Source: Hydrolagus colliei
Taxonomy: Eukaryota
Assembly: GCA_035084275.1 (NCBI GenBank)
Contig: CM068752.1
Location: 2,604,001-2,668,000 of the forward strand
Length of the DNA: 64,000 bases
Reading direction: 5' to 3'
How positions within the stretch are numbered: position 1 is the first letter of the stretch; each line of letters opens with the position of its first letter. Made by a program: the position numbers and the translations under genes. Shown piece by piece: positions 1 through 45,695 of the stretch. The notes below the pieces were generated by a model, which worked only from the letters and a program-made list of their open reading frames with translations, ran no database searches and was not told where the DNA came from.

Positions 1-289
1 TTGTGGCACTGATTTACTCATAGAATAATGGATTATAAGGAGTGATCTCAGTCTGTAATCTAACTGTGGCAATTGAGGAGGATTTTGAATGGAACAATCC
101 ATGGATATCTAATAGTGATTGCACACTGTAATCTAATGGATGGGTACAGGTGAATTTTTAGTAACTCCTGATAACTCATCACTCCGAGGGAGAAAGGATC
201 AGTGAAGAGGTAGGCATAGATCCTCCACCGCCACAAAGGGGCGCTGTGACTGATGCAAGTGCCCAGCGGAATTTGGGCGTGTTTGCTCA

Positions 290-602
290 GTAACACCGGA
301 GAAGCCTTTGCTTTATGGCCTTTAGTTTCATCCAGAACTCTGCAGCCCGCAGAGTCCTCTCCCGCACCAAGCTCCACGACCCTGTCACCCCACATATTCG
401 CCCAACTCCACTGGCTTCCCATCACTCAGAGAATTCAAGTAAAAATCCTGGTCCTCACCTTCAAAGCCCTCCATGGACTTGCCCCACCCTACCGTTACAA
501 CCTTCTAACTCCCTACTGTCCGTTCCCTCCTGCTCCATGTCCCCCAGCCCAAAGCCACTAGACAAATGTAATTTTGTGGCTGCTGTTATTGTTGTTGTTG
601 TT
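290..602 (+). mobile_element. L2 (LINE2) 3' fragment
   Basis: Encodes the L2 ORF2 C-terminal hallmark PHIFAQLHWLPITQRIQVKILVLTFKALHGLAPPY and ends in a (GTT)n tail. Confidence 0.85.
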
Positions 603-1148
603 TCTTGGAGGCCTCCCCCACCCACTCATGTCACAGGCCACAGTGCAGCCCTCAAACAGACCCAACATCTCTATGATGCATCTGAACATACTCACCCAGA
701 CTCCACTGAGACTGCCAGACAGACGGAAGGGCGGAGGCCATCTGCAATGACACCAGATGCTGCATGACACAGGTTATATGATTCTTTTGCGTTGAACGTA
801 CTCACAAGAATGTCTAGAATGTGCGACTAGTTACGTGTTAAGGGAGTGACTAGTGAAGCGGAGTCGCTTATTAACATTTTGAACTGGGAGGCGGCTGGGG
901 TATTGACGACGAGACAGCTTAAGTGTTAGCGACAAGTTCAACTAGGGTCTTGTTATCAGGAGTTTATGGTATATGTAGAACAGAAGATACCTGGAGTGAT
1001 TCCAAAGTAGTAAGTAATGCAATCCAATGGTTTCTGTGGATTGTGCAAACACTGAGGGAAAAGCCAAGGTGGAAATGAGTAAGCAAGAAAGACAGCCCGA
1101 GGGAGTAGCGAGATACTGAGCTTCAGTTTTATTAAACCTGGTGAATTG

Positions 1149-1455
1149 TAATAATAATAATAATAATAATAATAATCCTTGAATTTTGATCTAGCGCTTT
1201 TCACATCTTATCGACGTCTCAAAGCGCTTCACAGAATATACTGTAAAGTGAATTGACCGTATATTTGTGGGTGAAACGCGGCAGCCAATTGCGCACAGTC
1301 GTGGATTGAAATGACCAATTTTATTATTGTGGGTTTTTTGGACGGATTATTATTAGGTGTTTAGAGTAAGGAAACTTGCCTAAGGTTTCACCCTGACCTG
1401 CCTGGACTTGAACACATTTTCTCACGTTGTAAGGCAAGGACTCTGAGCTACAGGA
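1149..1455 (-). mobile_element. tRNA-derived SINE with L2-like tail
   Basis: Reverse complement of the window's dominant SINE: (AAT)n tail, GCGCTT..GACGTCTCAAAGCGC hairpin, decayed tRNA head (TGAGCTACAGGAGC). Confidence 0.85.
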
Positions 1456-2198
1456 GCAATAGAATTGTAGAAGGAAAGGAAGATTGAAATAGGTGAGGAG
1501 TTCATGATTGTGAGAAAGAAAGCAAGTAGGGGTTAAGGTAGATTGTTTCCATAGCATAATGCAATCTTAGGTGGGGCTGATGCCATAAAAATAATAATAC
1601 AGTAATAATAATCCTTGCATTTACAGCGCTTTTCATGTCTTTGAGATGCCTCAAAGTGCTTCACAGAATGTACTGTTTATATCACACTTTCAAAGTGGAA
1701 AAAAATCGAATTCAGGATTGATGAAAGTCTTCAGCATTTCTTCCATTTTTCATGATATGAAAACTCCAGGTTGCCAGTGGAGTTTTCAATGATTCTCTCT
1801 TGAGTGACTATCTCAGAGCTTTATCATTGTTATTACATTATATCAGGATAAGCACCATAAAGTCAAAATAACCTGATCTGTCATCCACCTATTCAGTTGT
1901 CCTAAGCAGCATTGTCAAGGATTTCCTATATTGACTTTTTGGCAAACCGCATGAGGTAAAACAATACACAGGAAGAGTGTCATGGAAAAGGTGAATAAGA
2001 CACTTTATATAGACTTTTTTTTTAACCCTCTCGGCAACAGAAATAACTAACCAAAGCAGCTGAAATATAATAATAGTATTCCCGCAAACACTCAAGCAGT
2101 GAACAACCAAATTTTTAAGATTTTTTCGGGGGGGTGGGGAGGGTTCAAGAAACCAGTAGAGAAACTCTCTTCACTTTTCAAATAGTGAGGAGTCTTTA

Positions 2199-2425
2199 CC
2201 ACAACAACAACAACTTCGATTTATATAGCGCCCTCACTCCACGCCAGACGGCATCTCAGAGCGTTTCACAATAACGGATCCCGCGACTGAGCCAGAGCCA
2301 GGGGCAGGGGGATAAAGGTGACCGAAGGTACGGTCGAAAAGAAGGTCTTGAGTTAGCCGTGACCTGAAACTAGGAAGAGAGGGAGTGAGGCGAAGGGAGT
2401 GAGGAAGGGAGTTCCAGAGCTGAAA
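2199..2425 (-). mobile_element. L2 3' end fragment
   Basis: (CAA)n tail on +; minus strand reads LWNSLPHSLRLTPSLPSFRSRL..LFDRTF, typical of the L2 ORF2 end. Confidence 0.75.
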
Positions 2426-2701
2426 GTCCACCTGAACAGAAATTCAGTTTAATTTCTCATCTGAAGCACGACACAGCTGCCATTGAATGGAGGTAAGGGA
2501 ATTAATTCCGTCTGTCAGACCCAGCTTTGAGAACTTTATGTGCTGTATATCTGAACAAAACAGGTGCTCAATTATTTGTCATGGACAACAGATGTTCTAT
2601 CAAAAATTGATACGTTTAAAACAACACGGCAAACAATAAAGTGAATTTAATATTGCAAAGAAAGGCTTTAGAGAAACAGCAAGTGGGAAAGTCTAAGAGT
2701 T

Positions 2702-2875
2702 GAATAATAATAATAATAATCATTGTATTCGATATAGCGCTTTTCACGTCTTCTAGACGTCTCAAAGCGCTTCACGGAGTATACTGTAAAGTGAATTAAT
2801 TGTATATTTACGGGTGAAAGTCGGCAGCCAATTGCGCACAGCAGCGTCCCCACAAACAGTTGTGAATTGAGTGAC
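2702..2875 (-). mobile_element. SINE 3' half
   Basis: Matches the 3' body and tail of the dominant SINE. Confidence 0.8.
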
Positions 2876-4669
2876 AAGGCAGGCTGGGGTGAATGAGTGT
2901 GATCCTCGGCCTCACCTGATTCCCACATTTGAATATGTTTTTTTAGCAGAGTTCATCAGCCAACATACAGCATCTCAACCTAACGGCCATCTTCCATGCG
3001 TGCAACTAGACGGGTTACTTGACTGTGTGTGTGTGTGTGACTGTGTGGGGGGGAAGATATCATAACTGAGTCCCCAAATCCATCTTCCACTTGCTTGCCT
3101 GCATTGTATCTCTGAACAGAACAAGTGCTGATTTTGGCTGATACGTTATCAGAAGAGTTGCAGCGTTGATAGCATCAGACAGGAGTAAATAGATAATATC
3201 TAGCAGGAAACCCAGCTGCTAATTGTAGCTTGCAGATTACCGCCCTGATTCAAATCCCAGCACACAGCAAATTCTCCTGAAGGGAAAGGCTGTAGAGTAT
3301 AATATACACGTCACGTGTAATGCCTTAATAGTATTTCTAGGAAGGTTTCATTTCTCCTGTGTTGCTAGAGCTTTGTCACTTCTTATACTTACACAGACAT
3401 TTAATCTGGCAGAGGGTGTGACCTAAAGTTGCATTTCCACGACATTTTGAGTGGGAAGAAGCTGCCCACAACATTTCTCATATAGCACGTCATCAGAATG
3501 GAACTCAATATTGTCAGAGTTCTGCTTCCTCTGGATCAGCATTTTGAAACATAAGCCTCAGCAACAAAAATAAGACCGAGTATGGTTTGCTTTTTGAACA
3601 ATATTTAGGCTTTTACGGCGCAACCTAATGGGACGCTGCTCTCTCTTAATTGTATTTTAAGCACATAAATCGAAAGGAAACCAGCAATTTCCTGGGGGTT
3701 AAAGCGAGGGATTAAGAATAACTTTACCTACTTTATGCACTTCTGGATAGGGGCAGCTGTATAAACACCGAGCTTGTTCGCAATTATCTGAAATCATCTG
3801 GAAAGGGATTTTTCTAATTTTCATCACTGTTGGCTTGATAGGAATTTCTCAGTCTCATGCCAATTCACCAACATGAAAGTGAACCCTGATCCCACGACTT
3901 TGCAGATCTGCACAAATGCGATACAAGTGGGTTTTTTTCAGGAGGCTGGATATGTCATAAATACAACTCTTCATAATGAAATGAAAGCACCTAATTAAGC
4001 GTTACTGATGACATTTGAGTGAAACAGAGAGCAACAGCGTTGTTCAACTTGAAATTCCGGCAATTCATTTCAAATGACCTAATGTGTGAGGCAAACGGTT
4101 TCTATTCATTGAGCTTGTTACATTTCTGTTATTCAAGCCGTGCTGCATTGTGTTCTACAAAACACATTGTGAATCTCCGACTGCTTAATGCGGCTGAAAT
4201 TGAATGAGTGCTCTCGGAAAAGCCCGGTTAACGTAATTAATGAGTAGATAGGTCAAAGTCAGCTAATGTACAATCCAGTAAAATAGCTTTGCATAGTTTA
4301 CAAAATCTTTTTTCTTGTAACATAATAATCCTCGCGTTTGATATAGCGGGTGAAACTCATCTTCTCGGGCCAGGGCCACTTTGTTTCGATGTGTTTGCTT
4401 ACGGGAGAGTTTCAATAGTCTGAAATCTTTTGATGAAACAAATCTCCAATAACAAATGAAATAATCAATTGTAAATGCAGGGGAATTCTCAGCAGAGCAA
4501 CTGGCATCCAACGGAGACAGATGAGTCGAACGCTGCAAGTATTAGCCCCACCCCACACTATCCGGTGTGAAATGGGTGGTTGAAAACGTTGTTGTCAAAA
4601 CTGAAACCATGAGCTCTCCATGAGGACGGTGAGAGTACAACAAGAGTGGATGTCTATTAACAGACCCAC

Positions 4670-4857
4670 CTACATCCAGTGCCTTTTCCAATCATTCCCA
4701 GATGTCGGGCTGATCCTTGTGGTAAACCAGTTCATGTGGCATTTTTCCGATGATTTTAACATATGGGACAGGAAATATCCCTTTTCAGTTAGTTCCCCCA
4801 GGGTGTTTCCCTTCATACCAGTTTTCATCTACTCTCCCGAGGAGAATCAATCTCTGA
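4670..4857 (-). pseudogene. SORBS-like pseudo-exon, SH3-2 core
   Basis: tatttcacag acceptor; [31 protein letters not shown] resembles SORBS2 [26 protein letters not shown]; TGA at 4785-4787. Confidence 0.85.
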
Positions 4858-5139
4858 CTGTGAAATACAACCCCAGCCCTTCGTTTGAGTGAAATACAAT
4901 TTGCATTTATGTAGTGCTTTTTGTATTGCCTTTCACGTAATAAATACAGCACAATGATCAAATCACATTTTCACTTGTTCTCTTGATGAATTTATCTCTG
5001 AACAGTAAGTGATTCAGTAAACTGTGTAGCTAAACCCGGGAGGATGTGTCAATATTTTGTTATTGTGGAGTGGAACTCATCTGTAATAATAACGTATTCC
5101 TGATGTAGAAGGCACTATACAAGTGTAATCTTGTTGTTG

Positions 5140-5447
5140 TTGTTAGAGCACTCGCCTTACAAGCGTAAGACCTGTGTTTCGAATCCAGGCAGGTCAGGGC
5201 AAAACTTTGGGCAAGTTTCCTTGCGCCACACTCCTAATAACAATCCGTCCAAAAAAACAACTACTGTATAATAAAAGGGGTCATTTTAATCCTCGACTGT
5301 TTGTGGGACGCAGCTGTGCGCAAATGGCTGCCGCGTTTCGCCCATAAATGTACAGTCAAATCACTTTACAGTATATTATGTGAAGTGCTTTGAGATGTCT
5401 AGCAGATGTGATAAGGCGCTAAATCAAATGCAAGGATATTATTATTT
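5140..5447 (+). mobile_element. tRNA-derived SINE (5' clipped)
   Basis: GTTAGAGCACTCGCC head, B-box TTCGAATCC, conserved body and tail. Confidence 0.85.
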
Positions 5448-5652
5448 AATTTTATATTAATAATAATAATTGTTGTGTCCCGTAATGCGAAAATAAAAAC
5501 ACGTCTTCTTACCACAGGAATTGTTTCTTTTCAGATTAGTGTAAATGCATATTCTATCTGCAAATAAATCCAGATTTAGTTTTTTTTTTAAATGAAGACT
5601 TCCACACCAGCAGCCGACAATAATATAAGTATGTGCTTAAATATATTGTGCA

Positions 5653-5810
5653 TAATAATAATCATCCTTGCTTTATCAAATCTCTGAGACGTCTCAAAGA
5701 ACTTCACAGAATATGCTCTTAAGTGAATTGACTGTATAGTTTGTGGGTGAAACGCCTCAGCCGGTTGCCCACAGCAGTGTCCCATTAAAACAGTTGTGGA
5801 TTAAGTGACC
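5653..5810 (-). mobile_element. SINE 3' half
   Basis: Dominant SINE body and tail in reverse orientation. Confidence 0.75.
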
Positions 5811-5816
5811 GCATAC

Positions 5817-5928
5817 TAAGTATGTATCTATCAGGAAGATACCACTCCCACCACTCGCCTTTGACTCCGGTCGTGATCGATCAGTCTGTAGTTCAGGACG
5901 GTGTCTCCTGTTCCTGACAGGCAATTCT
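5817..5928 (-). pseudogene. SORBS-like pseudo-exon, SH3-1 core
   Basis: tttctgcag|A GAA TTG CCT (phase 2, ELP), then GDTVLNYRLIDHD and GIF in shifting frames; donor gtatgc; 112 nt. Confidence 0.7.
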
Positions 5929-6687
5929 CTGCAGAAACATATTTCAGAGTTTTTCAGTGTCTTCATGAGGCTGAACTTTGGACATGATCATGTTTCCGGA
6001 TTAAAATAATCGATTTAATTGCACGCGGCATCTCTCAGATGTATTACGTGATTAAAGTTGGCCAGAAATCGAACTGTGTTAATGGTCTTTTTGCTAATGT
6101 GGCAAGTCAGGGTAACATTTTGGAACGGTGTTAGGGAGGGTGGCCAAAACAAAATCATCTGCTTTGCACATGGATATGCGAGCAGATGAATTCAGTACAC
6201 GGTGGGGATGGGGGGGGGGGGGGGGGGGGGAGCAACAAAAAACTTACCATTTGTATTTCAGCTATTACCACCAACGTGTATTTTAAATTGTCACACATTT
6301 TTTTAATAACACAGTCTCTATTTTTTTTTGTTGACGTGCTTGTTTTTTTGAAGCATCGAAAGTCACTGGCAGAAAGGGAGTTCAATGGTTCCGAAGGAGT
6401 TGGGGGAGAGGAGGGTGGGAGGCACTAGCAGGTCACAAAAGAGCAGCTCGATGAGGAAGGAAAGAAAGGAATAAAGAATCCAAACAGGATGTAGGGTGTA
6501 TATTATTCTGCTTCGAGGTTGTCAAACTCAGCTCGTAACAAAATACAAAGCGAGCAGATAAATAGCCTTAATCTAGAATGGCAGTGTTTTGGCGAAGACA
6601 ATTCATGTCGGTTCCTTAAGTCTTTGTTTCGATTCCTACCAAAGTTTTCTGTATTTGTCAACAGTTGTGAACTGTGAATAGTTCCTA

Positions 6688-6880
6688 TTATAATAATCCT
6701 TGCATTTGATATAGTGCTTTCCACATCTTCTAGACGTCTCAAAGCACTTCTCAGAATATACTGTAAATTGAAATGACTGTATATTGTGGGTGAAGCGTGG
6801 CAGCCAATTGCGCACAGCAGTGTCCCACAAACAGTCGTGGATAGAAATGACCAATTCTTTTTGAGGGATGATATTATTTG
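6688..6880 (-). mobile_element. SINE 3' half
   Basis: Dominant SINE body and tail in reverse orientation. Confidence 0.8.
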
Positions 6881-7177
6881 ACAATAAGCCTTGCATTTTG
6901 CCTTATGGTTTGGAGACGCGGCAACCAGTTGCACACAGCAAACCAAGATTCATTTATTTAATAAGCAAGATACAGTACAATGATTAAACCACAGTGAATG
7001 TAGAACTGGAAGAGAAAGCGATGAAGATTAGCAGCAAAAATATTGGAATGCAATGGAATATCATCTAATTTAATCGAATGCGGTCATTTTATTAAACTCT
7101 TTTGTTGAACTTTCTTTCTAATTTAAAAAATAACTTCAACATGGCATAAAACTAAAAACACATTTATTGGTACTCAC

Positions 7178-7231
7178 TTTAAAGTTGACCGTTTGACTGT
7201 AGAAATGGTACTTTGCTCGTACAGTTTGTCC
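7178..7231 (-). pseudogene. SORBS-like pseudo-exon, start of SH3-1
   Basis: ttatttcag|GGACAA...TTTAAA|gtgagta; removing a 7-nt near-duplication (ACGGTCA) gives a 47-nt phase 0-2 exon GQTVRAKYHFYSQTLK, compare SORBS1 MRPARAKFDFKAQTLK. Confidence 0.7.
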
Positions 7232-7490
7232 CTGAAATAATAAAATTCAGAGATAAAGGATAAATTCTTTCAAGAGAAATAATCCATTGTGACCATTAAA
7301 GTTAACTGATATTCATCATAACTTGTACGGGTAGACATAGCAAACGGTAATATGGAGTGTGGGTCAATTACGCTCCATGTATTCTTCATTTTATATATCA
7401 TACTTCCGTTTGATATTGATATACTGTAGTTACTTTCATATTGGAAGGATGTCTCAAAATATTTCAAAGGATGTATGGCAAATGCAGAGA

Positions 7491-9551: not shown

Positions 9552-9880
9552 GGAGCTCCGGTAGCTCAGTGGTTAGAGCTACTCGCCTTACAAGCGTGAG
9601 ACCTTTGTTCGAATCCAGGCAGAGCAGGTCGAAACCTTAGGCAAGTTTCCTTACTCCATACACACGCCTGATAATAACCCGTCCAAAAAAAAACCACAAT
9701 AATAAAATTGGTCATTTCAATCCACGACTGTTTGTGAGGACGTGCTGTGTGCAATTGGCTGCCGCATTTTGCCCACAAATATACAGCCAATTCACTTTAC
9801 AGTATAGTCTGTAAAGCGCTTTGAGACGTCGATAAGATGTGAAAAGCTCTATATTAAATGCAAGGATTATTATTATTATA
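9552..9880 (+). mobile_element. Full-length tRNA-derived SINE
   Basis: A-box TAGCTCAGTGG, B-box GTTCGAATCC, body, L2-like hairpin, (ATT)n tail. Confidence 0.9.
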
Positions 9881-10024
9881 AGAATAGCCACTTGACTGAG
9901 TTACCACAGAGTTTTGGTCACAAATGGGATGACATAAAGCTCAATACAGAGAGAGTAGACAAAAAGAACGGATTTATGTTTTGAGTTTACCTTTGAATGA
10001 AAGAATGCTTTGCACTATAGCAGT

Positions 10025-11385: not shown

Positions 11386-14300
11386 TATTAGATCTTGTGA
11401 AGGGCTGTCACAAATTTATTGGTTAAATCAGTGACATCAGTAAATAACACACTGATTACTCAAGAGGTTCTTCTTCATGGCTGTGAAAGAATGAAATATG
11501 TTACCACTGAAATATAGACTCGCTGCTGTGTGAAATCAATTATGTGGCCAATGTTCACAGCATTCGTTGACAGAAGAGTTCCATCAACATAAGGTAATTC
11601 CTATTTTGTAGCAACTGATCCATTCCTTAAGTTTTATGTAACCACTATTTTGGGCTGGATTGTAAAGAAGAATCTAACTTTTCACTGGTACATCACAAAT
11701 GCATTAAGTGCTGTTCTAGGAATGTCAGATGATAGATTAGTCCCCAGCGGATCAGTTGGTCTCTTCCTGTAAATAAATTCACTGAATATTCTTGGTGTAG
11801 CATGTAATGTATGCAAACTTTGCACAGTTGGACTTCATCCCAAATTTTAACATGATAATTCTCTTGCCAACAGCAATCCACAACAAATAACAATGCAGAA
11901 CAGAATTCCATCTGTATTGTCTTTGATTTATGGTAATCGAGCATTGACCACAACTCAGAATGATTTAATTGACTGTGCTTTGAAAATAGCCTTGCAGATT
12001 CCTATACAGATCTGTTATTGTTTGTCCACAAAAGCACAGTTCCGCCACTTGACAATACATCATATGAACTGCTTTGGGATGTCCTCCCGACTTCAAAGGT
12101 GCAATATCAAATGTAAGGATTATTATTATTATTATGATTGATAATCAAAGTGTTTCACAAATATTTTGGTGGATAGTTAGAACTCAACTAGGACTTAATG
12201 TCTGTAATGTAAGGATAGAGGCTGGGAATGCTGACATACAGTCAAAATAAGTGTTCAAGTTATATCAGTCTATCAGCTGTTACCTATCTTTCCTATCTGT
12301 TGGATTTTACATTACCAAAGATTTAGTGCCTTTGTTGGTTTGAGTTTGTGGAAATTTTAATTCAACAAAACTCCTGTTTATGAAGAGGCCACATACCTAG
12401 CTTTGCTGATGGCTGTATTTGCTGAAGTAGAGCTTTTTATCTGAAACCGAAACAAACACAGGGATTAAGTCTGTATCAATCTGCCGTTACCTTTAAAACA
12501 CAAAAGTCTCTACTCTTTAGTAATTTAAAAACTTTTAAGTTCTCGTTCAAGCAACACATTTTTCATTTCTCCTCTAAAATGATAATGAAAAATGGTTAGC
12601 AATGCATTCGGAAGGTTAGGATGGAAGCGTTTCTGCAAGAGAATGATTCTTTTGTTTTAAAAAAATCATATTATTAAAGACATCCGCCATGCTGAAATCT
12701 CAAATGATAAACAGATTTTCCAAGTGATCATCATATGAATTAGATTATTGCCTGTAATTTAGTCCTGGGCATCAATTGTTCTTAACACAAACCAACATGC
12801 CTCTTGACTATCTTAAAGTCTCATAATTATTTCCAGGCACCCATTACTCTTTACACAAACCATCTTGTTTAAATTAGTCTTGCAATCTCTCTCATACATA
12901 TCTGTCTTTGCAGAGGTAGGTACACACACTCAAATAACAGTTCTTACAGAACTGTCTAATGGTTTTCTCAGGTGCATAATCAAATATGCTCTTTGGTTCT
13001 GAGGCTGTTTTAACTGTCAGGAAATGTTTGATGGAAAACACTCAGGTACAATTAATGCTGGATTTATAATTGTAACTTCTGAAATATTTTGTATTGTTCA
13101 TATGCCTTTAAGACAGTGTGGTGGCGAGCATCTTTGTGATTGCAACAATAATAATGGAATGGTTTACCCCAATGAGTGTTAGTCAGCAGTTCAAAGCCAC
13201 CCATTAACTACAATGAAGTAACTGGCAATTAATCGGGATTTAAGATTTGATGTAGAAAGCAGCGAATTTCATATTGGTACAGTAAAGGGTAATTTGAAAG
13301 TGCTCCTGGCCAGAAAATCACATCCTCCCAGTGTTTCAAGAAGTCTCAACAACATGATAAGACGCTATCACAAATATTATTATTATTCCTAGCATCACAT
13401 CCTTTTACAGTTCCAATTATTTTATACTCACCCCTTCCTGAGATCATTTTGCAAAATTGAAGTCTAATGCGAATAAGGGCAGGTAAATTGGAGTGAATGG
13501 ATTTGCTCTTTCAAATACAATTAAATATTAATTTGCAATTATAGTGTATAGCACCTTTTCGCATTGGGAGGATGTTCACTGCCAGCTGGGGCACCCAAAC
13601 TGGAGGTAGGAGCTGAGAGCCATGGGGACTCTATCCGTGCTGTAAAGTTCCATGTATCGAAAAGACTAACATTTGCCATCAATCACTAATTGACTATTTC
13701 GCTGTGGGGTAGTTGTCATTGTTGAGTCAGAAAATCCAGCCCTTCCTGCGTCGAACAGTCTGAGCTTTTGTCAGTTGCCAGATTACGCACATGATAAACT
13801 ACTTCTGAAAAAGTTAATTAGAGGAACAGAATTACACAAGCGGTGAACTGTGTAAGCAACAGGGATTCGGGCTGAACTGGTTCACTCCTACCATCCATCT
13901 CTAATGTACAGAAAGCAATCAGACCAGCCTCGGGCAGTTTGCGTTCCTTGCACAGCAAGCCTGACCCACACTAGTGAAGCCCGACCTCTAGTGGGTTAAC
14001 CTTGTCAATAGCAACTGTAACCGGGATTTAAACTGCTCTCCACCCATTGGGACATAGATCATTGTTTGGGAACTGTCGCTCAGTGGGAAGGGACGTGGGC
14101 CTGAGCTGCGGAAGGGAAGACGGTGGCGATGCTCTCACCTATTTCATGTTGAGATGTGTTGCCCATTGGGAAACTCACAGGATGTCCTACCATCCAGCCA
14201 GTGAGGCTCAAACCCACAGCTGGCAGATGTTGAACTACCTACTGGCGATTATCGTCCAGGGAGAGGTGGGAAGTAAGCCTGGTCCACTTGAAGCTGAACT

Positions 14301-14618: not shown

Positions 14619-14922
14619 GTCCTGTAGCTCAATGGTTAGAGCACTCACCTTACAAACGAGAGACCTGGGTTCAATATCAGACAGGGTGAAACCTTGGACA
14701 AGATTCCTTACTCCACATGCCTGATAATAATACCCCACACAAACAAATTGGTCATTTCAATCCACGACTGTTTGTGGGACACTGCTGTGTGCAATTGGCT
14801 CCCTCGTTTCATCCACAAATATACAATGAATTCACTTTACAGCATCACTCCTGTGAAGCAGATTGGGACGTCTAGAAGACGTGGAAAATAATGATTGTAT
14901 CAATGCAAGGATTATTATTATT
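14619..14922 (+). mobile_element. tRNA-derived SINE
   Basis: GTCCTGTAGCTCAATGGTTAGAGCAC head to GGATTATTATT tail. Confidence 0.85.
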
Positions 14923-15367: not shown

Positions 15368-15689
15368 GTCCTGTAGCTCATTGCCTTAGAGCACTCGCCT
15401 TACAAATGTGAGACCTGTTCGAATCCAGGCAGGTCAGGGCAAAACCATGGGCAAGTTTCCTTTCTCCATTCACACGTCTAATAATAATCCCCCACCAAAA
15501 AAACACAATAAATAAAATTTGTCATTTCAACCCACGACTGTTTGTGGGACACTGCTATGCACAATTGGCTGCCGCATTTCGCCCACAAATATACAGTCAA
15601 TTCACTTTACGGTATATTCTATGAAGCGCTTTGAGACGTTGATAAGATGTGAAAAGCTCTATATCAAATGCAAGGATTATTATTATTAT
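15368..15689 (+). mobile_element. tRNA-derived SINE
   Basis: A and B boxes, body and (ATT)n tail. Confidence 0.9.
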
Positions 15690-17139
15690 AAGAGATGTGA
15701 CCAGATTTCAGGTAAATGGGTAAGATTTAATGCCTTGCTCGGAGGCTGCTATTTGATATTCAGAAACGATTTCAAATGTTTCCATATTAATGATCCAGGA
15801 AGTGATTGAATGGATTGCATTTCACCACAATGTCTGCTCCTTAATGTAAGGACCCCTGATAATGTAAAAAATATTATTATTACTGAACTTTGAGATGCGA
15901 GGACTGCAAGCCCCTCACCAACTCGAAGGTGGTAGGAATTCGACAATCACATCAACATCACAAAATGCTTTGCCGAACCATTCAGTTGGAATATTCCGTA
16001 ACATGAGGATGTAACACCAGTGAATCCACCCACTGAGATTCTAGAAATAGATATTTTATAGAAATATACAGTATATATAATATATAATAGTATCATCTCT
16101 CTAACTAGTTTCAAGCAGCAAGACAAAAATACCAGAAGAACTTGAGAACAATTATGCTAAATTAGAACAGATTCACTCTCTGTGTGGCTCCACAGCTGAC
16201 CTCTGAATTATTCAAATTCATCTCAAATGTAATCTGTGCCATATCTGAGCTCTCTCGCTCACTCACTCACTATCGGAGCATAGTGAGTGAGTGAGATACA
16301 ATGCTGGCCTTTCAGTAGCGTTGCCTCTGGGTAGAAGGAAAAGAATGAGATTATTTAGGCAGATGAATTGCAGAATATTTCCAGAGATGCCCCCTCTGTG
16401 ACAGGACCTTATACAGTAATAATAATCATTATCCTTGCATTTGATATAGCGCTTTTTGCATCTTATCGACGTCTCAAATATCCTTGGGAGTGACCTAGAT
16501 TTCTGGCCATTGTTGGGAAGATCAGCCTTTGGAGACTCTTCGAACATTTACATTGGTTGGCAGATCTGGTGATTGATTCAGGACTACCAAATAGTCTTGT
16601 TTTTTTTCCCCCCAGTAACAAATCCTTTGTGAAACTCTGGAGAAAATGTCTTTGTGTGTATAGTGTCCTCCGCAAATGTTTTGCAGAGCAGTGGTTCAAC
16701 TCACTGAGGTCTCAATCTATGACCTACGACAAGCGTGAGCCTTTCTGTTGATTCAGAATCCTCCCAGTTCTTTTAGAGATAACTCACTGGGAGTACTGTA
16801 TTGTGTGAGGGTTTCACCTGTTTTAGAGGCATTGAAAATCGTTCACGGTTCGTATGTTTTAATGAGCCACATACACACACACACACACACACACACAGTG
16901 ATCGAATAATCTAGACGATTACAGACAAAATATCTGTGTGTCCACCACCAAGAACGCGATAACCAATTGACGAAGAGATATAATTTATACCTCATCGGAA
17001 GAGGGAGATCTTGCAAGGAGAGGGTGGGGGGAGTGTCATGGGCATATTGTTTTCAGTGGATTTCCTATGATTGATATTAAAATAGGCTTTAATTAAGACC
17101 CACCCCAAAAAAGGTATGAATAGTGTTCTGGGGTTTGAG

Positions 17140-17745
17140 GGGCAGAGGCTAGGGAGTGAGGGGGAGGGGCTGGGGAGTGAGGGGAGGATCTGAGAGCTGG
17201 GGGGAGGGGCTGGAAGCAGGGGGAGGGGCTGTGGAGGGGAGGGGCTGTGAGCATGGGGAGGGGCTGTGAGCAGAGAGAGGGCCTGGGGAGGGGAGGGGCT
17301 GTGAGCAGGGGGGAGGGGCTGTGAGCATGGGGAGGGGCTGGAAGCAGGGAGAGAGGCTGGGGAGGGGCGCTGGGGAGGGGCTGTGAGCAGGGGGGGAGGG
17401 GCTGGGGAGGGGCACTGGGGAGGGGCTGTGAGCAGAGGGGAGGGGCTGGGGGGGGGCTGGGAGAAGGGGGGAGGGGCTGTGAGAAGGGGAGGGGCTGGGA
17501 GCAGGGGCTTGGGAGGGGCTGGGGGAGGGCCTGGGAGCAGGAGGGAGGGGCTGTGAGCAGGGGCTGGGGTGGGGCTGAGGGGAGGGGCTGGGGTGGAGCT
17601 GGGGGGAGGGGCTGTGAGCAGGGGCTGGGGTGGGGCTGGGGGGAGGGGCTGTGAGCAGGGAGGGGCTGGGGGAGGGGCTGTGAGCAGGGGGGAGTGGCTG
17701 GGGGGAGGAGCTGGGGGGCCTGGAAGGGCGGGGGGGGGGGGGGGC
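17140..17745 (+). repeat. G-rich minisatellite (unit approx. GGGGAGGGGCTGTGAGCA) upstream of UBTD2
   Basis: Many imperfect tandem copies; explains the spurious Pro-rich ORFs. Confidence 0.9.
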
Positions 17746-18110
17746 AAAGGGCTGGTGTCGGGAGCGTGCACTGCCCGCTGCTGCGTTGTGTGTCGAGGCC
17801 GCGCTGGTGTCGGGAGCGCGGGCGGGGGGCGCGGCCTGGAGGCTGGAGCGCGCGCGCGGAGGGAGCCATGGGCGGGTGTGTGGGCTCCCAGCGCGGCTCC
17901 GCGGGCAGCCTGACCGAGGCCTCGGACACGGCGGGAGGTGAGAGCGGCAGCGGGGCCTGAGGTGGGGGCGGGCGGGGTGGAGGGAAGGTGAGGCCGGGGA
18001 CAGACACAAAGGCCTCGGGAGCCGGGGAGCCGCCAGCGGCAGCTCCGGGGCCTCGGCCTAGTGTGTGTGTGAGTGAGTGTCCCCGGCCCCGCATTGACTA
18101 AAGCCGGTCA
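17745..18110 (+). promoter_or_regulatory. CpG island at UBTD2 promoter/exon 1
   Basis: High GC and CpG density (GCGCGCGCGCGG, GGGGCGGG GC boxes) around the start codon. Confidence 0.8.
17868..17937 (+). CDS. UBTD2: Ubiquitin domain-containing protein 2, coding exon 1
   Basis: Kozak GCCATGG; MGGCVGSQRGSAGSLTEASDTAG; 70 nt, donor GAG|gtgaga. Confidence 0.92.
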
Positions 18111-18630
18111 CTGTGTGTGTGTGTGTGTGTGTGTCTGTATAATGTGTCTGTGTGTCTGTGTGTCTGGTCTAATGTCTGTGTGTCTGTATAATGTGTGTGT
18201 GTCTGTGTGTCTGGTCTAATGTCTGTGTGTCTGTATAATGTGTGTGTGTGTGTCTGTATATGTCTTTGTGTGTCTGTATGTTTGTGTCTGTCTTGTCTGT
18301 GTCTGTATATGTGTCTGTGTGTGTGTGTGTCCGTCTGTGGATGTCTATCTTGTCTGTATTTGAATGTGTGTCTATGTGTGTGTGTGTGTGTGTCTTGTCT
18401 GTATTTGGGTGTGTCACTCTATGTGTGTGTCTGTCTGCATGTGTCTCTGTAAGTGTCCGTATATGCGTGTGTGTCTCTGTATGTCTGCGTGTGTGTCTCT
18501 GTATGTCTGCGTGTGTGTCCCTGTGTGTCTATGTGTGTGTGTGTCTGTATGTGTCTCTTGTGTGTTTATATGTCTCGGTCAGTATGTCTGTCTTTGTGTG
18601 TGTGTGTGTGTCTGTATGTGTGTGTGTGGG
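18110..18630 (+). repeat. Degenerate (TG)n/(TGTC)n simple repeat
   Basis: Directly visible. Confidence 0.9.
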
Positions 18631-21600
18631 TAATAATACAATAAATACTAATGATAATCTTTGCGTTTTTTTATCTACAATTTCGCACAATTTACTGCGG
18701 TTCGGTCACGAGCAACGTTATGTACTGTTCTGTGTGACAGGCCTTGGGGTATCCACCCCCCCCCCCCCCCCCCCCCCCCGTTGAACATTGTGCATTAGTT
18801 CTGGAGGCTGGGATTCATTCGCCACAGAAGTTTCAGTGAGGTTCAAGCACTTCTTGGGCGCTACGCTGTGTGAGGTGATGCTATATAAATGCCACAATAA
18901 CAACTTGCGAGTTGTTAATCTTTTGCTGCTCCATTTCCTGCGGATTGCCAGCAAGCTGTATCCATAAAGGACGGGTATATCATTTCTGTGTGTACAGAAA
19001 GTAGTGTCTGCAGTAGATGCATTTATATTAATTATTGCTTATTACATCCAGTGGAATAAGTATCTCCTATCACTGTTACCACTACACCTGTAGTGAGACA
19101 ACTGGACCGGTTCATTTCATTATTGTTGTCAACATAGGCCTGGACTGTCTCTTCCAGTCTTCATAATAATATAATACAGTGTGTCTCTTTCTGTCTTCAT
19201 AGCAATAACGTAATACATTCATTCTCATCAACAACAGCACAAATTATATTTGTACAGCATCTTTCACGTCAAGAGGATGTCCCAAGGCGCTGGACAGTCA
19301 CAGTCTTTATTATAATAATAATAATGAAATACATTGTGTCTCTTCCCCTCTTCATTACAACGATAATAAGATATCTGTTCCTGTCTTTGTGATAGAATGG
19401 TTCACTTTGCAGCCAGAATGAGAACTCTTTCCCCCCACCCCTCCCAGGGTAGTTGATTTTGGATAAGTCAGATTAGGATCAATGATTGTGAAAGTTGAAC
19501 AAATCAGTAAAGAAAAGAGTCAAATAGTAAACGTGGTTGTTTTTCTTTTACAGGGAAGCCTTCTCTGAGGGAATTCAAATGGCCACAGGAAAGTCCAGTG
19601 TGAGAGTAGGTGATGTGTTAGTTTTAGTGAGATTTTATTACTTTTAAGAATAGTTTTAGAGAAAACGACCTTATAAGAATGGTGAGAGTGACAAAGAATA
19701 TGTGGAGGTGAGGGGTTTGAGGTAAATCCAGCTGGCACAACTTCCTTCATCCTGTGAAGTACCTTATGCTGTGCATCGCACAGGTCTGTCATTTGCGATC
19801 TTCCAGGTTTGAAAGCTCTGCGCCATTGCCAGACTTGACTGACGCACATTTCCCTCCACTTCATTCAGAAGTTTCTGGTGCTCAAGGGTCTGATTTTGGA
19901 GTAGTGCTAACATATGTCCTTTCCTATCCATTTCTCTTTTCTACTGGGTCTGTAGATTCCACTCAAAACACCTAATCAATGGGTATTGGTATGTTTTGTG
20001 CTGTTTAGCAGAGGGTTTTAAATGCTCAGTTGCTAACATGCAACAACAACAATAACAAAATTACAGGAACTTCTGTGCAGATAGCTTTAACAATGGTATT
20101 TTAATTTTTGACACAGATTTTTGCTTTATGTAATGTTTGGGTATGCAAACATTACTGAATGTTACAATATACAAGAGACAAATCCTTTGTTTTGAAATCT
20201 TTTAGCAAAGTACTCTGTGTTCAGACATGTTCAAAATGAGCCTTTTTTTTCCTCTCGGTGAACTAATAGTTCAGACAACAAACACGTAGGCAGTATGTTA
20301 TGCTCTTCATATTTGTACAGCATTTTTCCTTTCTTCCCCATGATTTTAGCATTTATGATTTCCAGACTCCCAGCTTGTGTTGCTTTCTTTTGGAATTTAA
20401 TTTTAAGATAACAATACTTCTGATGAATAGAACATGTTGGAATGCACTGCCAACTATTAAAAAAAAAGCCTTTGAACAGATAGCTGCAATATGTTCTACA
20501 GTAAAATATGCTCTTTTCTCAGCTGTTCTGCTTTGGATATGTTAGCAGCAGACTCCAGAGTAGTGATTGTAGTGCCAACAAAAGTAAATTGTATTTATCA
20601 AGAGGTTATTGTGTAATTAAATGTACTCCCCCCCCCCCCCCAAAGAAAGAACACTTGTGTGGCCATGCCAGGCCTGATGCTGAGATTGCAGCTGCATGTG
20701 TACAAAAGCAGCTGTGATGAATGCAGTGGCTTCACTATAGAGCTGGTCATGCTGTTGATTTGGGATTGTGAACAATGGTTATCAATATGAGTAAATTTAA
20801 TATTATTTTTCTCAGATGGGATAACTTCAGGTGTACAAATTCAGGTGCTTCCTAGTTTAATCACAGAAACATTTTATTTAGAATTTTCACCGTTCTATCA
20901 CTTATTGAGATAATAGATGTCATTATCTAAATTGAGTTTACAATGACCAGAATAATTAAGTCACATCCTGCTCTGAGTCATCGATAAAGGGTTATTGCTC
21001 TCAGCGCCTTGGGACGTCCTCCCGACGTGAGAGACGCTCTATCAATGTAATTTTGTTGTTATTGTTGTTCACGGGAAGCTGACCTAAAAAAAATGTTTGT
21101 GCCTTTTCATATTCACAAAGCAAGGAGATAGGGAGTGAGGAATAGTTTATTCTGGCTCAGGACAGGTGTGTAAAGCACAGAGGATTATCAGGCAAGTGGA
21201 CACAGCTCAAAATAGTACATCCCTCTACAGGTACAGTATTAGTGTTTTGTAAAAGGAAAATACAGTACAACATTGTAAAATATTCAAAGGATTCAGAGGA
21301 TGTCCCATAAACTGCCCATTCTTTGCCTGGGGTTTATCATTTGAGTTCCAACATTAGCTTGCAGCCATGTATAGTTCCATGTTGCCCATTATATTTAAAG
21401 TACTAAATAAATTGCAATGGATCAGCCGAACGCTTGAGTAAGATGTTACACTTTCCACTTTGTGGTCAAGTCTTCAGGTTTCTCATCTTTACAAATTATT
21501 GAACCAAGTGTTTTGCTTTTTTTTACAAAAAAAATCCCATGTTTTTATTGAGGTGCAGAAAAAAAGAGAAATGCTAAGTATTCAGTTGGTTTTTTTAAAA

Positions 21601-21861
21601 GAGACACATTTTGTAGTTTACAATGTATTCAATGTGAAACAGTGCTATACAGTTGCTGGTTCTTTAGTTTTATACTTCACATACTTCACAAAGTGGTTCT
21701 ATTCTTCCTGTCATCTCCAATCCTTGGCTCCCACCAATCTACACTTAATACTCTCTGGAATTAGATAAGAAGATTATCTAATTTCAGGGAGAGACTGCAC
21801 ATTCTAATCCAGATGCGCAGAAATTGCCATGTGTCGGCATATGGTTTGGATACTCTTAAGT

Positions 21862-22145
21862 AACAACAAATTGCACTTGTATAGTGCCCTTCACATTGGA
21901 AAGATGGTAGTCAAGGGTTTTTGGACCCTAGCTGGGAGTTAGGGTCAGGAGGTTGGAGGATAGGAAGGTTGGGGCTGGAGGGCAGGGTGGCCAAAGGCAT
22001 GTTGAAGAGGAAAGTCTAGACTTGGAGGAGGCAAGAGAGAGGGTGAGGCAGATGGGATTGTGGGATAGACTTTCAGGTTTGGGGGAAGAGTTGTTGAATG
22101 CCCAATCGCCAATGGTGGGGGCGGGATATACGGTGATGGATAGGA
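21862..22145 (-). mobile_element. L2 3' fragment
   Basis: ACAACAAATTGCAC tail and PTIGDWAF-type ORF2 end on minus. Confidence 0.7.
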
Positions 22146-22875
22146 TGGTGTTCTGCATTTGCTGCTTCTCTATTTGCAATGAGCCATTGAATGAGTCGGA
22201 TAGAAACCTGGATGAACCCTGGAGATGGTCTTACTTTGAAAGACTATTTCCAGCCACAGAGATCAACCACTAATTTTTAGTAGCCAATTAGGTCATTCTC
22301 CATCAAAGTAAAACCTGCGTTCTCAGGACCTTTTCTCAGTCAAGTAGCGTATCTTAGAAATCACGATTCCATTTCTTCAACAAAGACCCACTCCCATCTA
22401 ACTCTAATGTGGAATGTCAGCAAGACATTTAATTATTGAAGTGAGACTCCATTGGTTTAAAATAGTGAAAATCTAAATTAAGAGGAGTTGTTGGAGCATG
22501 CCTTGAGGTACAGCTGCTCTTGCCAACTTTAACAGTGTCGTCAGTCTCAGATGCCATGTAACTGTGAACAAGCTGCCTACAGTGCGGGGTGGATAGATCT
22601 CTGCTTGCTAAGTCAGGCTCCTTTCTGTTGTATTGAGAAGTCTAGAAGACAAAGCACTTTGAGACGTTCAGAAGACGTGAAATGCGCTGTACCAAATGCA
22701 AGGATTCTTATTATTATTGGAATCATTTTTGTTCCTATGATGGCAATTACTGTAAAGCACTTTGAAACAATTTGACATAATGTGTTATAAAAATGCAAGT
22801 TTATTCCTTCCTCTATGATATGGGGATGACCTTCACTGCCAGCAATCCACAATTCCTTTCCCTTGCATTGAACCA

Positions 22876-23045
22876 TAATAATAATAATCCTTGCATTTGT
22901 TATAGCGCTTTGCACGTCTTCTAGATGTCTCAAAGCCGTTCACAGAATAAAGTGAATTGAATTGACTGTATATTTTGTGAACAAAACGCAGCAGCCAATT
23001 GCGCACAGCAGTGTCCTGCAAACAGTCGTGGATTGAGTGATCAAA
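22876..23045 (-). mobile_element. SINE 3' half
   Basis: Dominant SINE body and tail reversed. Confidence 0.8.
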
Positions 23046-23428
23046 TTATTATTTAAGTTGCATATTTCTGTGGACCCTAGCTCTTCCTGTTTTGCGAGAT
23101 GATCCATGGGGACATATAGTGTCACAGGCAAGATGTCCTGTATCTCATTTTCTAATTGCACAGATTTCTTTTGCTGGTAATTGAGAGAAATGATTTGCTT
23201 ATAGTACATGTTTTTTGCTAATGGAGGTTTTGTGGTGGTCTTCGCTGTGATTTCAGAGGCATGTGGAGTAAGGAAACTTCCCCAACGTTTCGCCCTGTCT
23301 GGGAATTTGTACCCAGGTCCGATTGATTGCGAAGCGAGCGCTCTAACCTCTGAGCTACAGGACAGTAGGTTTTAAATATTATTAGGAATTATTACAAATT
23401 GTTTATTTTGTTCGTTCGTTTGTTTCAG

Positions 23429-23665
23429 TGGCTTTGGGGCGCAATCAACCCCTGAAGAAAGAAAAGCCCAAATGGAAGAGTGATTATCCAATGACGGACG
23501 GACAGTTACGCAGTAAGAGAGATGAATTCTGGGACACTGCCCCTGCCTTCGAAGGTCGAAAGGAGATCTGGGATGCTCTCAAGGCCGCGGCTCATGCTTT
23601 TGAAGGCAATGATCATGAACTCGCCCAAGCAATCATTGATGGTGCAAATATAACTCTACCACATG
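23429..23665 (+). CDS. UBTD2: Ubiquitin domain-containing protein 2, coding exon 2
   Basis: [59 protein letters not shown]; acceptor tttcag, donor gtaggt; 237 nt. Confidence 0.97.
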
Positions 23666-23974
23666 GTAGGTGCAGTACCGCTTCATACATGTAGCACTTT
23701 AGTTATCTTTATTACATCCTCATGTGTGGAGTCCTCAGATGAAGCTCCTGCAGTATAAAATAACCGTGTAGTAATTCAATTGTGAATCGAAGTGTAACCC
23801 ACACCAGGTTGAAATTAGTTTCCATAGGTTTTCAATCAATAACTGATTTGGTCAGTAATTATAATGCTTGCTGGAATTTTTGTTTGAGAACTTTTCATAA
23901 TACCGTTGACACTTATTGAATTTTGAGTTCAAATGTTCAGTTTGGATTGGAAGGAATACCAATCTCATATTAGG

Positions 23975-24260
23975 AGACAAAATCCGATTTAAAATGGTCA
24001 TTAAAACAATCAAGAGGGGAGGTGAGGAGAACTGTTTTCACACAGTGAGTTGTTCGGATCGGGAATGTATTGCCTGAAAGGGTGGTTGATCCGATAATAA
24101 CTTTTAAAAGAGAAGTCGATAGTTATTTTGGGAGGACGGGTTTGCAGGGTTATGGGGAGAGTGTGGGGCAGTGGGATTGATTTGGATAGCTCCTTTCAAA
24201 AAGCCAGAACAGGTACGATGGGCCAAATGGTGGAGCACTCTACAGTATAATTCTATGATG
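23975..24260 (+). mobile_element. CR1-like LINE 3' end
   Basis: GAGGTGAGGAGAACTGTTTTCACACAGTGAGTTGTT..GGGAAT..GATGGGCCAAATGG..TTCTATGAT typical of CR1 3' termini. Confidence 0.7.
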
Positions 24261-24696
24261 ACTACATGGGTCATCCAAATATTGTCATTTTGCAATGTTG
24301 TAATTGCTTTATCAAGAAGCTGCACTGTAAAATACAGCCTACTGTGATTATTAATAGTACCAGTGAAATGTGGTACCATACAATTGCAAAATGGTTTTCA
24401 AATCTTTTATGATATCGAGCTATTAAAACTTAATACAATCATAAAAAGTTATTTGGAAAAGTTATCAATCTCATGCTCAGAACAAAGTTTCCCAGAATCG
24501 TTTGATTTCACGTCAAGAAAAGGCACTTTTTTTTTTCTGTGAAGCGCTTTGAGACATCTGGAAGATGTGAAAACCACTATATCAAACGCAAGGATTGTTG
24601 TTATTAATTTTAATGTGGGTACGTGAAGGGTAGAACAGTCACTGTCTGGTGCAGACCAGAAAACAAACTGCAGAGTGCTCCACCTTGTGGTTTTGC

Positions 24697-24875
24697 CAAT
24701 AATAATCCCTGTATTTGATACAACGCCTCTCACGTCTTTGTGACGTCTCAAAGTGCTTCATAGAATATTCTGTAAATTGAGTTGTCTGTATATTTTGTGG
24801 GCAAAACTCAGCAGCCAATTGAGCACAGCAATGTCCCACAGTCGTGGATTGAAGTGACCCAATTTATTATTATAT
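24697..24875 (-). mobile_element. SINE 3' half
   Basis: Dominant SINE reversed. Confidence 0.75.
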
Positions 24876-25176
24876 TGTAACATGTGAATACAAGAAATTA
24901 AATACATACGCATCACATTTCAGCTTTAAACTCTTAATTGTATGCATGTTGACTTAACGGGTTGAGTTGAGATTCGTATCTTTGTAAACATTACAGAGAG
25001 ACCGATGTGAATGTGCTGTCTTATTTAGAACAGTGAACTGGACATTAAGTATAAATATTAGAAAGTATCCTTTTTTAAAATACATTGACATTGCCAAGTT
25101 GCTTATACGGTCACATTTGTATGTTTTGTAATCAATTATCAGATATTCACTCATAACAGTCTATCCTGTTTATATA

Positions 25177-25334
25177 CAGTAAAAACTGTTTATCCGGCTT
25201 TTTTTTCAATGCATTTTTACGGATAAATTCCAGTTAATCGAATGTGGGCCTTTTTTTTGCGTTGCCGTTTTTTTGCATTGCCGGTTATACAGAAGTTACG
25301 GTTGATGGGGTGCCGGATAAACAGGCTTTTACTG
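25177..25334. mobile_element. Tigger/pogo-like MITE
   Basis: TIRs CAGTAAAAACTGTTTATCCGGC ... GCCGGATAAACAGGCTTTTACTG, left flank TA. Confidence 0.75.
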
Positions 25335-25552
25335 AATACGTGTATATATATATATATATGCCACGTTTCACCCACAATATATAGTCAATTTACTTTAGAG
25401 TATTTTCTGTGAAGCGCTTTGAGAATTCTAGAAGATGTGAAAAGCACTATATCAAAATGCAAGGATGAATATTACCGCGAAATGTTCATAGCGAAATGTT
25501 TATATTTAATCTTTAGGATATTTTATGCTTGTTTTCCACTCTTCCAACACAG

Positions 25553-33317: not shown

Positions 33318-33590
<273 letters not shown>

Positions 33591-39096: not shown

Positions 39097-40150
<1,054 letters not shown>

Positions 40151-45149: not shown

Positions 45150-45695
<546 letters not shown>

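Follow-up and report, generated by a model that had tools for sequence, protein, structure and literature searches.

The SORBS adaptors (CAP/ponsin, ArgBP2 and vinexin) have been treated as a three-gene family, with the fourth place of their paralogon left empty. In an excerpt of Larsson et al. (2008, PMC2453138), the SORB family is described as having three human members, with a sorbin-homology (SoHo) domain and three SH3 domains, located in the paralogon of human chromosomes (Hsa) 4, 5, 8 and 10, for which the commonest tree topology is given as (Hsa8,Hsa10),(Hsa4,Hsa5). In other vertebrates, SORBS3 is placed beside PDLIM2, FGF17 and NPM2 in an excerpt of PMC6233590. The stretch of Hydrolagus colliei DNA analysed here (contig CM068752.1, positions 2,604,001 to 2,668,000; its full 64,000 nucleotides are referred to as the window) contains a broken SORBS-type adaptor gene that adjoins UBTD2, and both the existence of this relic and its family identity can be regarded as secure. 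The nearest relatives of the relic are not SORBS1, SORBS2 or SORBS3 but a distinct set of intact three-SH3 proteins from 18 shark and ray species, designated group X below. The reading that we favour, although it is not proven, is that group X represents the fourth SORBS copy generated when the genome was duplicated twice in early vertebrates.

The relic exons and their family identity

Four colinear pseudo-exons on the minus strand of the window match SORBS-type proteins:

12948-13013, minus strand: pseudo-exon N, coding for …(V)KTASEPKSIFDYAPEKTIRQF, the SORBS motif …EPRSxFxYEPGKS… upstream of the SH3 domains
7178-7231, minus strand: pseudo-exon A, the first strand of SH3-1, GQTVRAKYHFYSQTVNFK; frame open
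5817-5928, minus strand: pseudo-exon B, the remainder of SH3-1, ELPVRN/GDTVLNYRLIDHD/…SG/LPDRYI; three frameshifts
4707-4857, minus strand: pseudo-exon C, the second half of SH3-2 and the start of the following linker

Exons A, B and C had been described in a first-pass annotation as three colinear minus-strand pseudo-exons, and they were found where it placed them; taken as the full set they were incomplete, and exon N has now been added. The same annotation read them as spelling SH3-1 and SH3-2. Both domains are indeed recognizable, but exon B can be read only through three frameshifts, and of SH3-2 only the second half is present.

Every one of these exons keeps splice signals. Exon N is flanked by …ctgacag and gtaaga (AG and GT), exon A by …tttcag upstream and gtgagt downstream, and exon B, the first residues of which are ELPVR, by …ctgcag upstream and gtatgc downstream, while exon C begins at 4857 directly after the acceptor …ttcacag. 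The exons, which span at least 8.4 kb, are thus separated by introns (0.96, 1.25 and 5.7 kb long) that retain splice signals, and the earlier description of an intron-containing, non-processed SORBS-family relic is borne out by these signals together with the profile scan and the Protein Data Bank (PDB) match given below. The open-frame piece at 12948-13013 includes …EPKSIFDYAPEKT… and was located by tblastn with SORBS2 and group X proteins, which gave a colinear match at 12961-13017 to …EPRSIFEYEPGKS…. This motif is present upstream of the SH3 domains in the relic (exon N), SORBS1, SORBS2 and group X; its use as a family motif is our own reading of the alignments and not a published definition. 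Exon A is two codons longer than its counterparts in the relatives (…QTSK) and is identical to the Heptranchias protein at 12 of 17 residues.

All searches were carried out exon by exon. The first half of exon C matched the SH3-2 domain of human SORBS1 in PDB (E 1.3e-4, 24.1 bits) and the tandem SH3 chain 2mox (E 1.1e-9). Taken alone, neither the exon A and B pieces nor the second half of exon C gave an SH3 match in PDB, and all five exon pieces alone gave nothing in Pfam, because half-domains are too short to score. A homologue search with the 58-residue open frame over exon C likewise returned no candidate within the length range searched. When a profile of 17 group X proteins was run by hmmsearch over all 4036 stop-to-stop fragments of the window, the first two ranks were taken by the halves of exon C (E 1.1e-7 and 4.3e-7), the third by exon A (E 0.83) and the fifth by the piece at 12895-13041, all of these top relic pieces lying on the minus strand and in protein order. 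A frameshift-tolerant profile scan of both strands of the window, made segment by segment, gave scores of 165.8 for exon C, 41.5 for exon A (next best in the window 24.5, on the plus strand), 36.4 for exon N (next best 23.6) and 46.9 for exon B, the last being beaten only by a cross-match to the paralogous SH3 of exon C. The score of none of the four exons was reached in 100 whole-strand shuffles, and that of exon B was not reached in 200 shuffles of the 2.3-kb A-C interval.

By tblastn, exon C scored 61-74 bits against group X versus at most 55.5 bits against SORBS1/2, with identities of 57-68% to X, 49-58% to SORBS2, 44-52% to SORBS1 and 42% to SORBS3, and it was about equally far from sharks and rays. 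The standout match (69.7 bits, E 1.5e-15) was to an electric ray protein, the 347-residue “SORBS2-like” prediction of Narcine bancroftii, and its alignment runs beyond the SH3 domain into the linker. On a tree of 52 columns, exon C joined group X with support of 87/89, at no resolved place within the group. The relic and group X moreover share group-specific residues in exon C (…N(R)KGIFPV…, …IGK…, …H(K/R)D.P…), and group X is the best match for every recognizable piece of the relic, with the same order of motifs. Against 1.84 billion representatives, a 30-residue exon C query retrieved 26 proteins at E ≤0.001; the 25 that were looked up comprised 14 SORBS-named proteins, nine without a useful name and two named otherwise, namely a moth “variant SH3” protein and a starfish SH3RF1-like protein. 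The closest relatives of the relic are therefore SORBS proteins rather than other SH3 families.

In the PDB list for exon C, SORBS2 and vinexin, like SH3RF1, scored below SORBS1. The starfish protein, and the appearance of SH3RF1 (20.5 bits) and SH3RF2 (18 bits) in this list, are what can be said for a match to another multi-SH3 family, such as SH3RF, SH3D19 or the neighbouring SH3PXD2B/Tks4, or for a chance match. The SH3RF1/2 E3 ligases do have an SH3 core, “VDENW…GIFP”, similar to exon C, but they score lower than SORBS1 SH3-2, they offer no counterpart of the SORBS-specific exon N or of the linker after the SH3 domain, which matches group X only, and no RING exon was seen in the window; all four relic pieces, in addition, beat every shuffle. 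Such an origin is thus considered extremely improbable, and SH3RF and SH3D19, which had been named beforehand as families that might fit better, proved no better in the PDB and representative searches.

Several weaker similarities were noted around these exons. Downstream of exon C, similarity to the Narcine protein may reach ~4605 in tblastn, and the group X linker profile gave no support for such an extension. The frame of exon C is open for 38 codons upstream of its acceptor (window 4860-4970, minus strand), and upstream of the exon a stretch, …KHYINANC.ISLKRRAG…, aligns by tblastn with the first half of SH3-2 of SORBS2 proteins across a 5-residue gap. The group X profile did not pick up this stretch, and exon C is preceded by a good acceptor site; the stretch may be a chance similarity or the remnant of an older exon arrangement. 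In the A-B intron, at 6320-6388 of the minus strand, …PLNSLSASDFRCFKKTSTSTKK… is weakly like the N-terminal …NSLAAKGFRSVRPKFLT… of group X, with scores of 33.2 and 28.4 that are close to the shuffle maxima, and its order is not colinear with the gene.

Lesions and loss of function

Both SH3 domains still present in the relic are damaged. In exon B there is one extra base near 5909, and one base is lacking near 5869 and again near 5840; a frameshift-aware alignment shows identity with the group X consensus at 18 of 37 residues, with another residue in place of the conserved Trp. In exon C, an Arg codon of the relatives corresponds to an in-frame TGA (4785-4787), there is one codon too many (GG), and a second stop is reached at 4692-4694 when the frame is read on. 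The first half of SH3-2 had no match in the window with the group X profile; it would be expected within 4860-5817, an interval now occupied by copies of a short interspersed nuclear element (SINE). The pseudo-exons themselves lie outside the SINE copies, with which the introns are filled:

5140-5452, strand not assigned: tRNA-derived SINE copy in the B-C intron (repeat families D1-D4, I1-I19)
5673-5800 and 6687-6862: further SINE copies in the introns

The scan for missing parts was made with the group X profile divided into seven C-terminal segments and 20 N-terminal tiles. Neither half of SH3-3 rose above the shuffles anywhere in the window, including 1-4600, and this domain may lie beyond the window start. 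The linker and the N-terminal half did not rise above the shuffles either, apart from the exon N tile (N376) and borderline tiles at 6320-6356, and no trace of SoHo was detected in the window. The first-pass suggestion to look for SH3-3 to the left and for SoHo to the right thus yielded nothing in the window scan. The missing N-terminal half is weak evidence, because shark and ray proteins agree at only 43% of positions in this half; the missing 5′ end of the relic would sit between 13 kb and the GC-rich island described below. The three C-terminal SH3 domains in family order, as the family is defined in the excerpt of PMC2453138, are not present in the relic, which is a dead member of the SORBS family and not a working one.

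The lesions recur in independent material. In a second sample of the same organism, contigs spanning 4400-5138, 5726-6197 and 6833-7400, and with them exons A, B and C, differ from the window only at 4871 and 5038; since they carry the same stop, extra codon and frameshifts, these are not assembly errors. The single N run of the window (59936-60071) is far from the relic. In a related organism, C, which is about 2-3% different, a contig covering 5699-6014 has six substitutions and no gap, so the exon B frameshifts are common to it; in another related organism, B, a contig covering 4712-4959 has three substitutions (their positions not listed) and no gap. Because organism C shares the exon B frameshifts, the death of the gene predates the divergence of at least the present organism (A) and organism C.

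It might be supposed that the locus still works, as a shorter SH3 protein or a regulated transcript, and that the lesions are assembly errors or are spliced around. Exons A and N are open and have good splice signals, and no RNA run contains the stretch, an absence which does not show silence. At the same time, the lesions are found in the independent sample and, for the exon B frameshifts, in a related organism as well; three frameshifts, a lost Trp and a stop are distributed over both remaining SH3 domains; and the first half of SH3-2 and the whole of SH3-3 are undetectable though well conserved in the relatives. A working gene is accordingly judged very improbable, and the relic most likely does nothing now. 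Disabling lesions lie in a copy that keeps its introns, as in unitary pseudogenes, and the relic would be best described as a unitary, non-processed pseudogene, the decayed local copy of a group X gene.

Group X in sharks and rays

Group X was found by a search with the Narcine protein, followed by a profile built from this protein and two skate isoforms; proteins of 305-970 residues were searched, and the best 120 of 1760 matches were listed. Among these, 17 shark and ray rows scored 468-1235 bits and were separated by a gap from the remaining 103 rows at 238-242 bits, the named ones of which are SORBS2 of birds, crocodilians and marsupials. No holocephalan protein occurs among the group X rows in these best 120 matches. 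With species from cluster look-ups included, the group comprises seven batoids (Rhinoraja, Amblyraja, Leucoraja, Pristis, Mobula, Hypanus and Narcine) and 11 sharks (Heptranchias, Pristiophorus, Heterodontus, Stegostoma, Chiloscyllium, Hemiscyllium, Cetorhinus, Carcharodon, Mustelus and two Scyliorhinus). The first-pass suggestion that the gene is “possibly intact in relatives” is thus upheld, by sequence, whereas its term “lost” holds for the present genome and not for sharks and rays, which keep group X.

These genes already stand in public catalogues under automatic names. The names disagree with one another (“uncharacterized LOC…”, “SORBS1-like”, “SORBS1 homolog”, “SORBS2-like” and “vinexin-like”), as the following examples illustrate:

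Scyliorhinus canicula: LOC119965344
Amblyraja radiata: LOC116978244
Leucoraja erinacea: LOC129701830
Carcharodon carcharias: LOC121280791
H. sabinus: LOC132405624
Rhinoraja longicauda: LOC144599806
Pristis pectinata: automatically named “SORBS1-like”
Chiloscyllium plagiosum: automatically named “vinexin-like”
Narcine bancroftii: automatically named “SORBS2-like”

In the library searched, which does not cover supplementary files, no paper names a fourth SORBS or any one of six of the LOC identifiers; the text matches obtained for “sorbs4” were rejected as accidents of text, such as “absorbs^44^”.

An X protein has about 640-760 residues, with a fast-evolving N-terminal half, the motif …EPRSxFDYEPGKS… and three C-terminal SH3 domains, which were recognized as three SH3 stretches with E 1e-32 to 1e-35. 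Mean identity between sharks and rays is 69% in the SH3 region. In two of the three proteins scanned, a sub-threshold SoHo (PF02208) match of 12.6 and 13.6 bits (cut-off 27) coincides with …WYKSMFK…, which aligns to …DWYKNMFKQIH… of SORBS1. The sorbin-homology motif of X appears, from these alignments, to be vestigial; some true SORBS1 isoforms likewise have no SoHo (P0014). Skate contigs of 2.1-2.2 kb carry the entire 663-residue X frame and represent spliced transcripts, because the introns are kilobase-sized in the relic. The feature look-alikes of an X protein are SORBS1/2 clusters, and by analogy with SORBS2 an intact X protein is most likely a cytoskeletal or adhesion adaptor whose SH3 domains would bind proline-rich partners. 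Compared with these intact genes, the relic is broken and has no detectable first half of SH3-2, SH3-3 or N-terminal half.

Some X models have unusual ends. The Narcine model (P0005) has an unrelated N-terminus and ends inside SH3-3, and the listed isoforms of Hypanus (P0060), Mustelus (P0065) and Pristiophorus (P0069) are without the SH3-3 end. These may be annotation errors, alternative ends or, in Narcine, decay.

SORBS2 (ArgBP2) resembles group X in the number and order of its SH3 domains (three) and in the …EPRSIFEYEPGKS… motif, but has a full SoHo domain (55 bits in P0036, versus 12.6-13.6 bits in X), is split from X by a stem of 1.35 changes per column, and has a neighbourhood unlike that of the relic, which is of the UBTD2/EFCAB9/STK10 type. 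SORBS1 (CAP/ponsin) provides the best solved-structure match of exon C, and its probable intron positions, after …YVE and …FRK, would coincide with where exon B ends and exon C begins. These positions come from a fish SORBS1 open reading frame (ORF), P0024 (Logan contig of 3807 nucleotides), which has insertions of 33 and 27 residues after …YVE and …FRK; the insertions are read, from the sequence, as two short retained introns that would have been translated through. The intron comparison is thus indirect and concerns two of the three positions, the second of which lies before GERITL / NQTVVL / SQRLIL, with …TSK|ELP… outside it. SORBS3 (vinexin) belongs to the same family, and one X gene bears the automatic name “vinexin-like”, but the coelacanth SORBS3 joins SORBS1 and not X in the tree and the identity of SORBS3 to exon C is the lowest.

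Origin of group X and chromosomal setting of the relic

In a quick tree of 56 rows, X (support 100) and SORBS2 (99) each formed a clade within a vertebrate clade (100), SORBS1 (42) was placed with SORBS3 and a lamprey protein, the three lines were not resolved, and the branching inside X followed elasmobranch taxonomy. Excluded from it were P0001, P0010, P0026, the great majority of the 103 SORBS2 rows of birds, reptiles and mammals, and most isoforms. A more careful tree of 32 rows, from which further rows that were fragmentary or long were also omitted (Narcine, two Gekko rows, Coregonus, P0024, several X species and nine unnamed invertebrate-like rows), recovered (SORBS2,X) with 91/82, (SORBS1,SORBS3) with 97/95 and the vertebrates with 100/99. 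In it, X lies outside bony-vertebrate SORBS2 (99/100) as well as outside SORBS1 plus SORBS3 (97/95), on a stem of 1.35 changes per column.

Derivation of X from shark SORBS1 was rejected: a constraint uniting X with both Scyliorhinus SORBS1 rows lowers the log-likelihood by 52.8 units (p of the approximately unbiased (AU) test, 0.0004). Shark SORBS1 groups with bony-fish SORBS1, apart from X, and in S. canicula the X gene and a SORBS1-like gene are located on different chromosome-sized records (244 Mb and 31 Mb). Nesting of the relic inside one existing shark paralog, which had been put forward as a finding that would tell against a fourth member, is seen in the letter, with exon C joining X, except that X is itself the candidate fourth member and not SORBS1, SORBS2 or SORBS3.

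The genes to the right of the relic, all within 35 kb of it, are as follows:

17868-25950, plus strand: UBTD2, head-to-head with the relic; last exon 25525-25950, another exon within 23428-23694
32589-33581, minus strand: EFCAB9 exons, matching PDB chains 9ubw and 7eeb (E 3.8e-11 and 5.4e-11)
39100-64000, plus strand: STK10/SLK-type kinase, running off the window end

The last exon of UBTD2 matched 1ttn (DC-UbP/UBTD2, E 1.4e-62) and 2ksn (UBTD2, E 1.1e-20) in PDB. The kinase exon at 45153-45410 scored 98.5 bits against human SLK and 93.2 bits against human STK10, an exon that cannot separate the two; the name STK10 rests on the neighbours, because this exon slightly favours SLK. The placement of the relic beside UBTD2-EFCAB9-STK10, as proposed at the outset, therefore agrees with the PDB matches, with the kinase given as STK10/SLK. 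We take the order in human 5q35 to be UBTD2-EFCAB9-STK10, with SH3PXD2B on the other side of UBTD2, and SORBS1, SORBS2 and SORBS3 to be located on Hsa10, Hsa4 (4q35) and Hsa8, respectively. The relic sits in a block paralogous to the regions of the other SORBS members, and, with these human SORBS locations, the position of X in an Hsa5-type block as the sister of SORBS2 is exactly the (8,10),(4,5) pattern.

The claim of a fourth whole-genome duplication copy, with which the study began, is consequently strengthened in that X is a separate vertebrate clade placed within (SORBS2,X) and apart from (SORBS1,SORBS3), but it stands only as the favoured reading, since duplication of SORBS2 would give a similar tree. 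According to this alternative, the relic does belong to group X, but X arose as a DNA-level duplicate of SORBS2 in the cartilaginous-fish stem and diverged fast, without being a product of the two genome duplications. X is sister to SORBS2, the best non-X matches among those listed are SORBS2, the Narcine protein was named “SORBS2-like” by NCBI, the long stem of X shows a burst of change, and the tree set contains no chondrichthyan SORBS2 that would separate the two scenarios. This has to be set against the coincidence, for a random segmental duplication, of an intron-bearing copy falling into a block paralogous to the SORBS1/2/3 regions, the identity of the topology with the (4,5),(8,10) expectation for ohnologs, and the existence of the relic outside sharks and rays, which, if its bearer is a chimaera, puts the origin before the split of the living cartilaginous fishes. 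A SORBS2 duplicate is on these grounds regarded as unlikely, and it is the most substantial of the alternatives considered.

The third possibility concerns the site and not the descent of the gene: the relic could be a secondary decayed duplicate, with an intact X elsewhere in the genome and an ancestral X site that is not beside UBTD2. Our view is confined to this 64-kb window, and the N-terminal exons and SH3-3 are undetectable in it, as they would be in a partial duplicate. N-terminal exons, however, are hard to detect in any case at the shark-ray identity given above, no chimaera-type protein is present among the 17 listed X rows versus 18 shark and ray species, the exons with their splice signals extend over a length like that of a full gene, and the location fits the paralogon. 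We hold a secondary duplicate to be quite improbable.

This last possibility is one of several points that weigh against the origin of X by genome duplication and the ancestral site of the relic. The positional orthology of the relic and the intact elasmobranch genes is inferred from sequence. Exons A and B are not significant by themselves against PDB or Pfam. The (SORBS2,X) node is moderate in the careful tree and is not resolved in the larger quick tree, the very long X stem (1.25-1.35 changes per column) may pull the placement by branch length, and the group constrained in the AU test was chosen after the tree had been seen. Finally, the trees contain no chondrichthyan SORBS2 or SORBS3, the sole SORBS3 being that of the coelacanth, and therefore the sisterhood of X and bony-vertebrate SORBS2 fits a cartilaginous-fish-specific SORBS2 duplicate equally well.

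With these points taken into account, origin by genome duplication remains the reading that we prefer. X would then complete the set of four left by the two rounds of duplication, as the Hsa5-type counterpart of SORBS2, SORBS3 and SORBS1. The common ancestor of cartilaginous fishes would have carried the gene between UBTD2 and SH3PXD2B; bony vertebrates would have lost it, and it would have died separately in the present lineage after relaxed selection. It is rather probable, on this account, that sharks and rays have kept a functional “SORBS4” for more than 400 million years, that bony vertebrates lost it, and that a separate loss here left a fossil at the ancestral site. If so, the first jawed vertebrates had four SORBS members, the SORB family offers a complete quartet for reconstructing the Hsa4/5/8/10 duplications, and sharks and rays possess a naturally occurring fourth adaptor in which the sorbin-homology region is degenerate. 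The main value of the relic itself would be to fix the site of the gene in an early cartilaginous fish and to show repeated loss. The result is modest in kind, as cartilaginous fishes are already known to retain ohnologs that bony vertebrates have lost.

Additionally, some minor features of the window were recorded. The GC (guanine plus cytosine) fraction is 0.55 at 16-18 kb, and a GC-rich island at 16992-18094, at the presumed promoter and first exon of UBTD2, contains long proline-rich ORFs in several frames; the UBTD2 start codon is presumably in this island near 17868 (MGGCVGS…, as in the UBTD2 N-terminus). The island is followed at 18169-18784 by a long (CA/TG)-type microsatellite. Directly after the first coding exon of the kinase, a long (TC/CT)n-like low-complexity tract (39250-40350) gives rise to spurious Ser/Leu/Pro-rich ORFs. 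The tRNA-headed SINE family of the relic introns is also present at 1185-1412, 2704-2850, 9606-9883, 14619-14845 and 15416-15693, with a conserved core and in both orientations across the window, and the contig depth on the SINE amounts to millions in all four runs, two related organisms among them.

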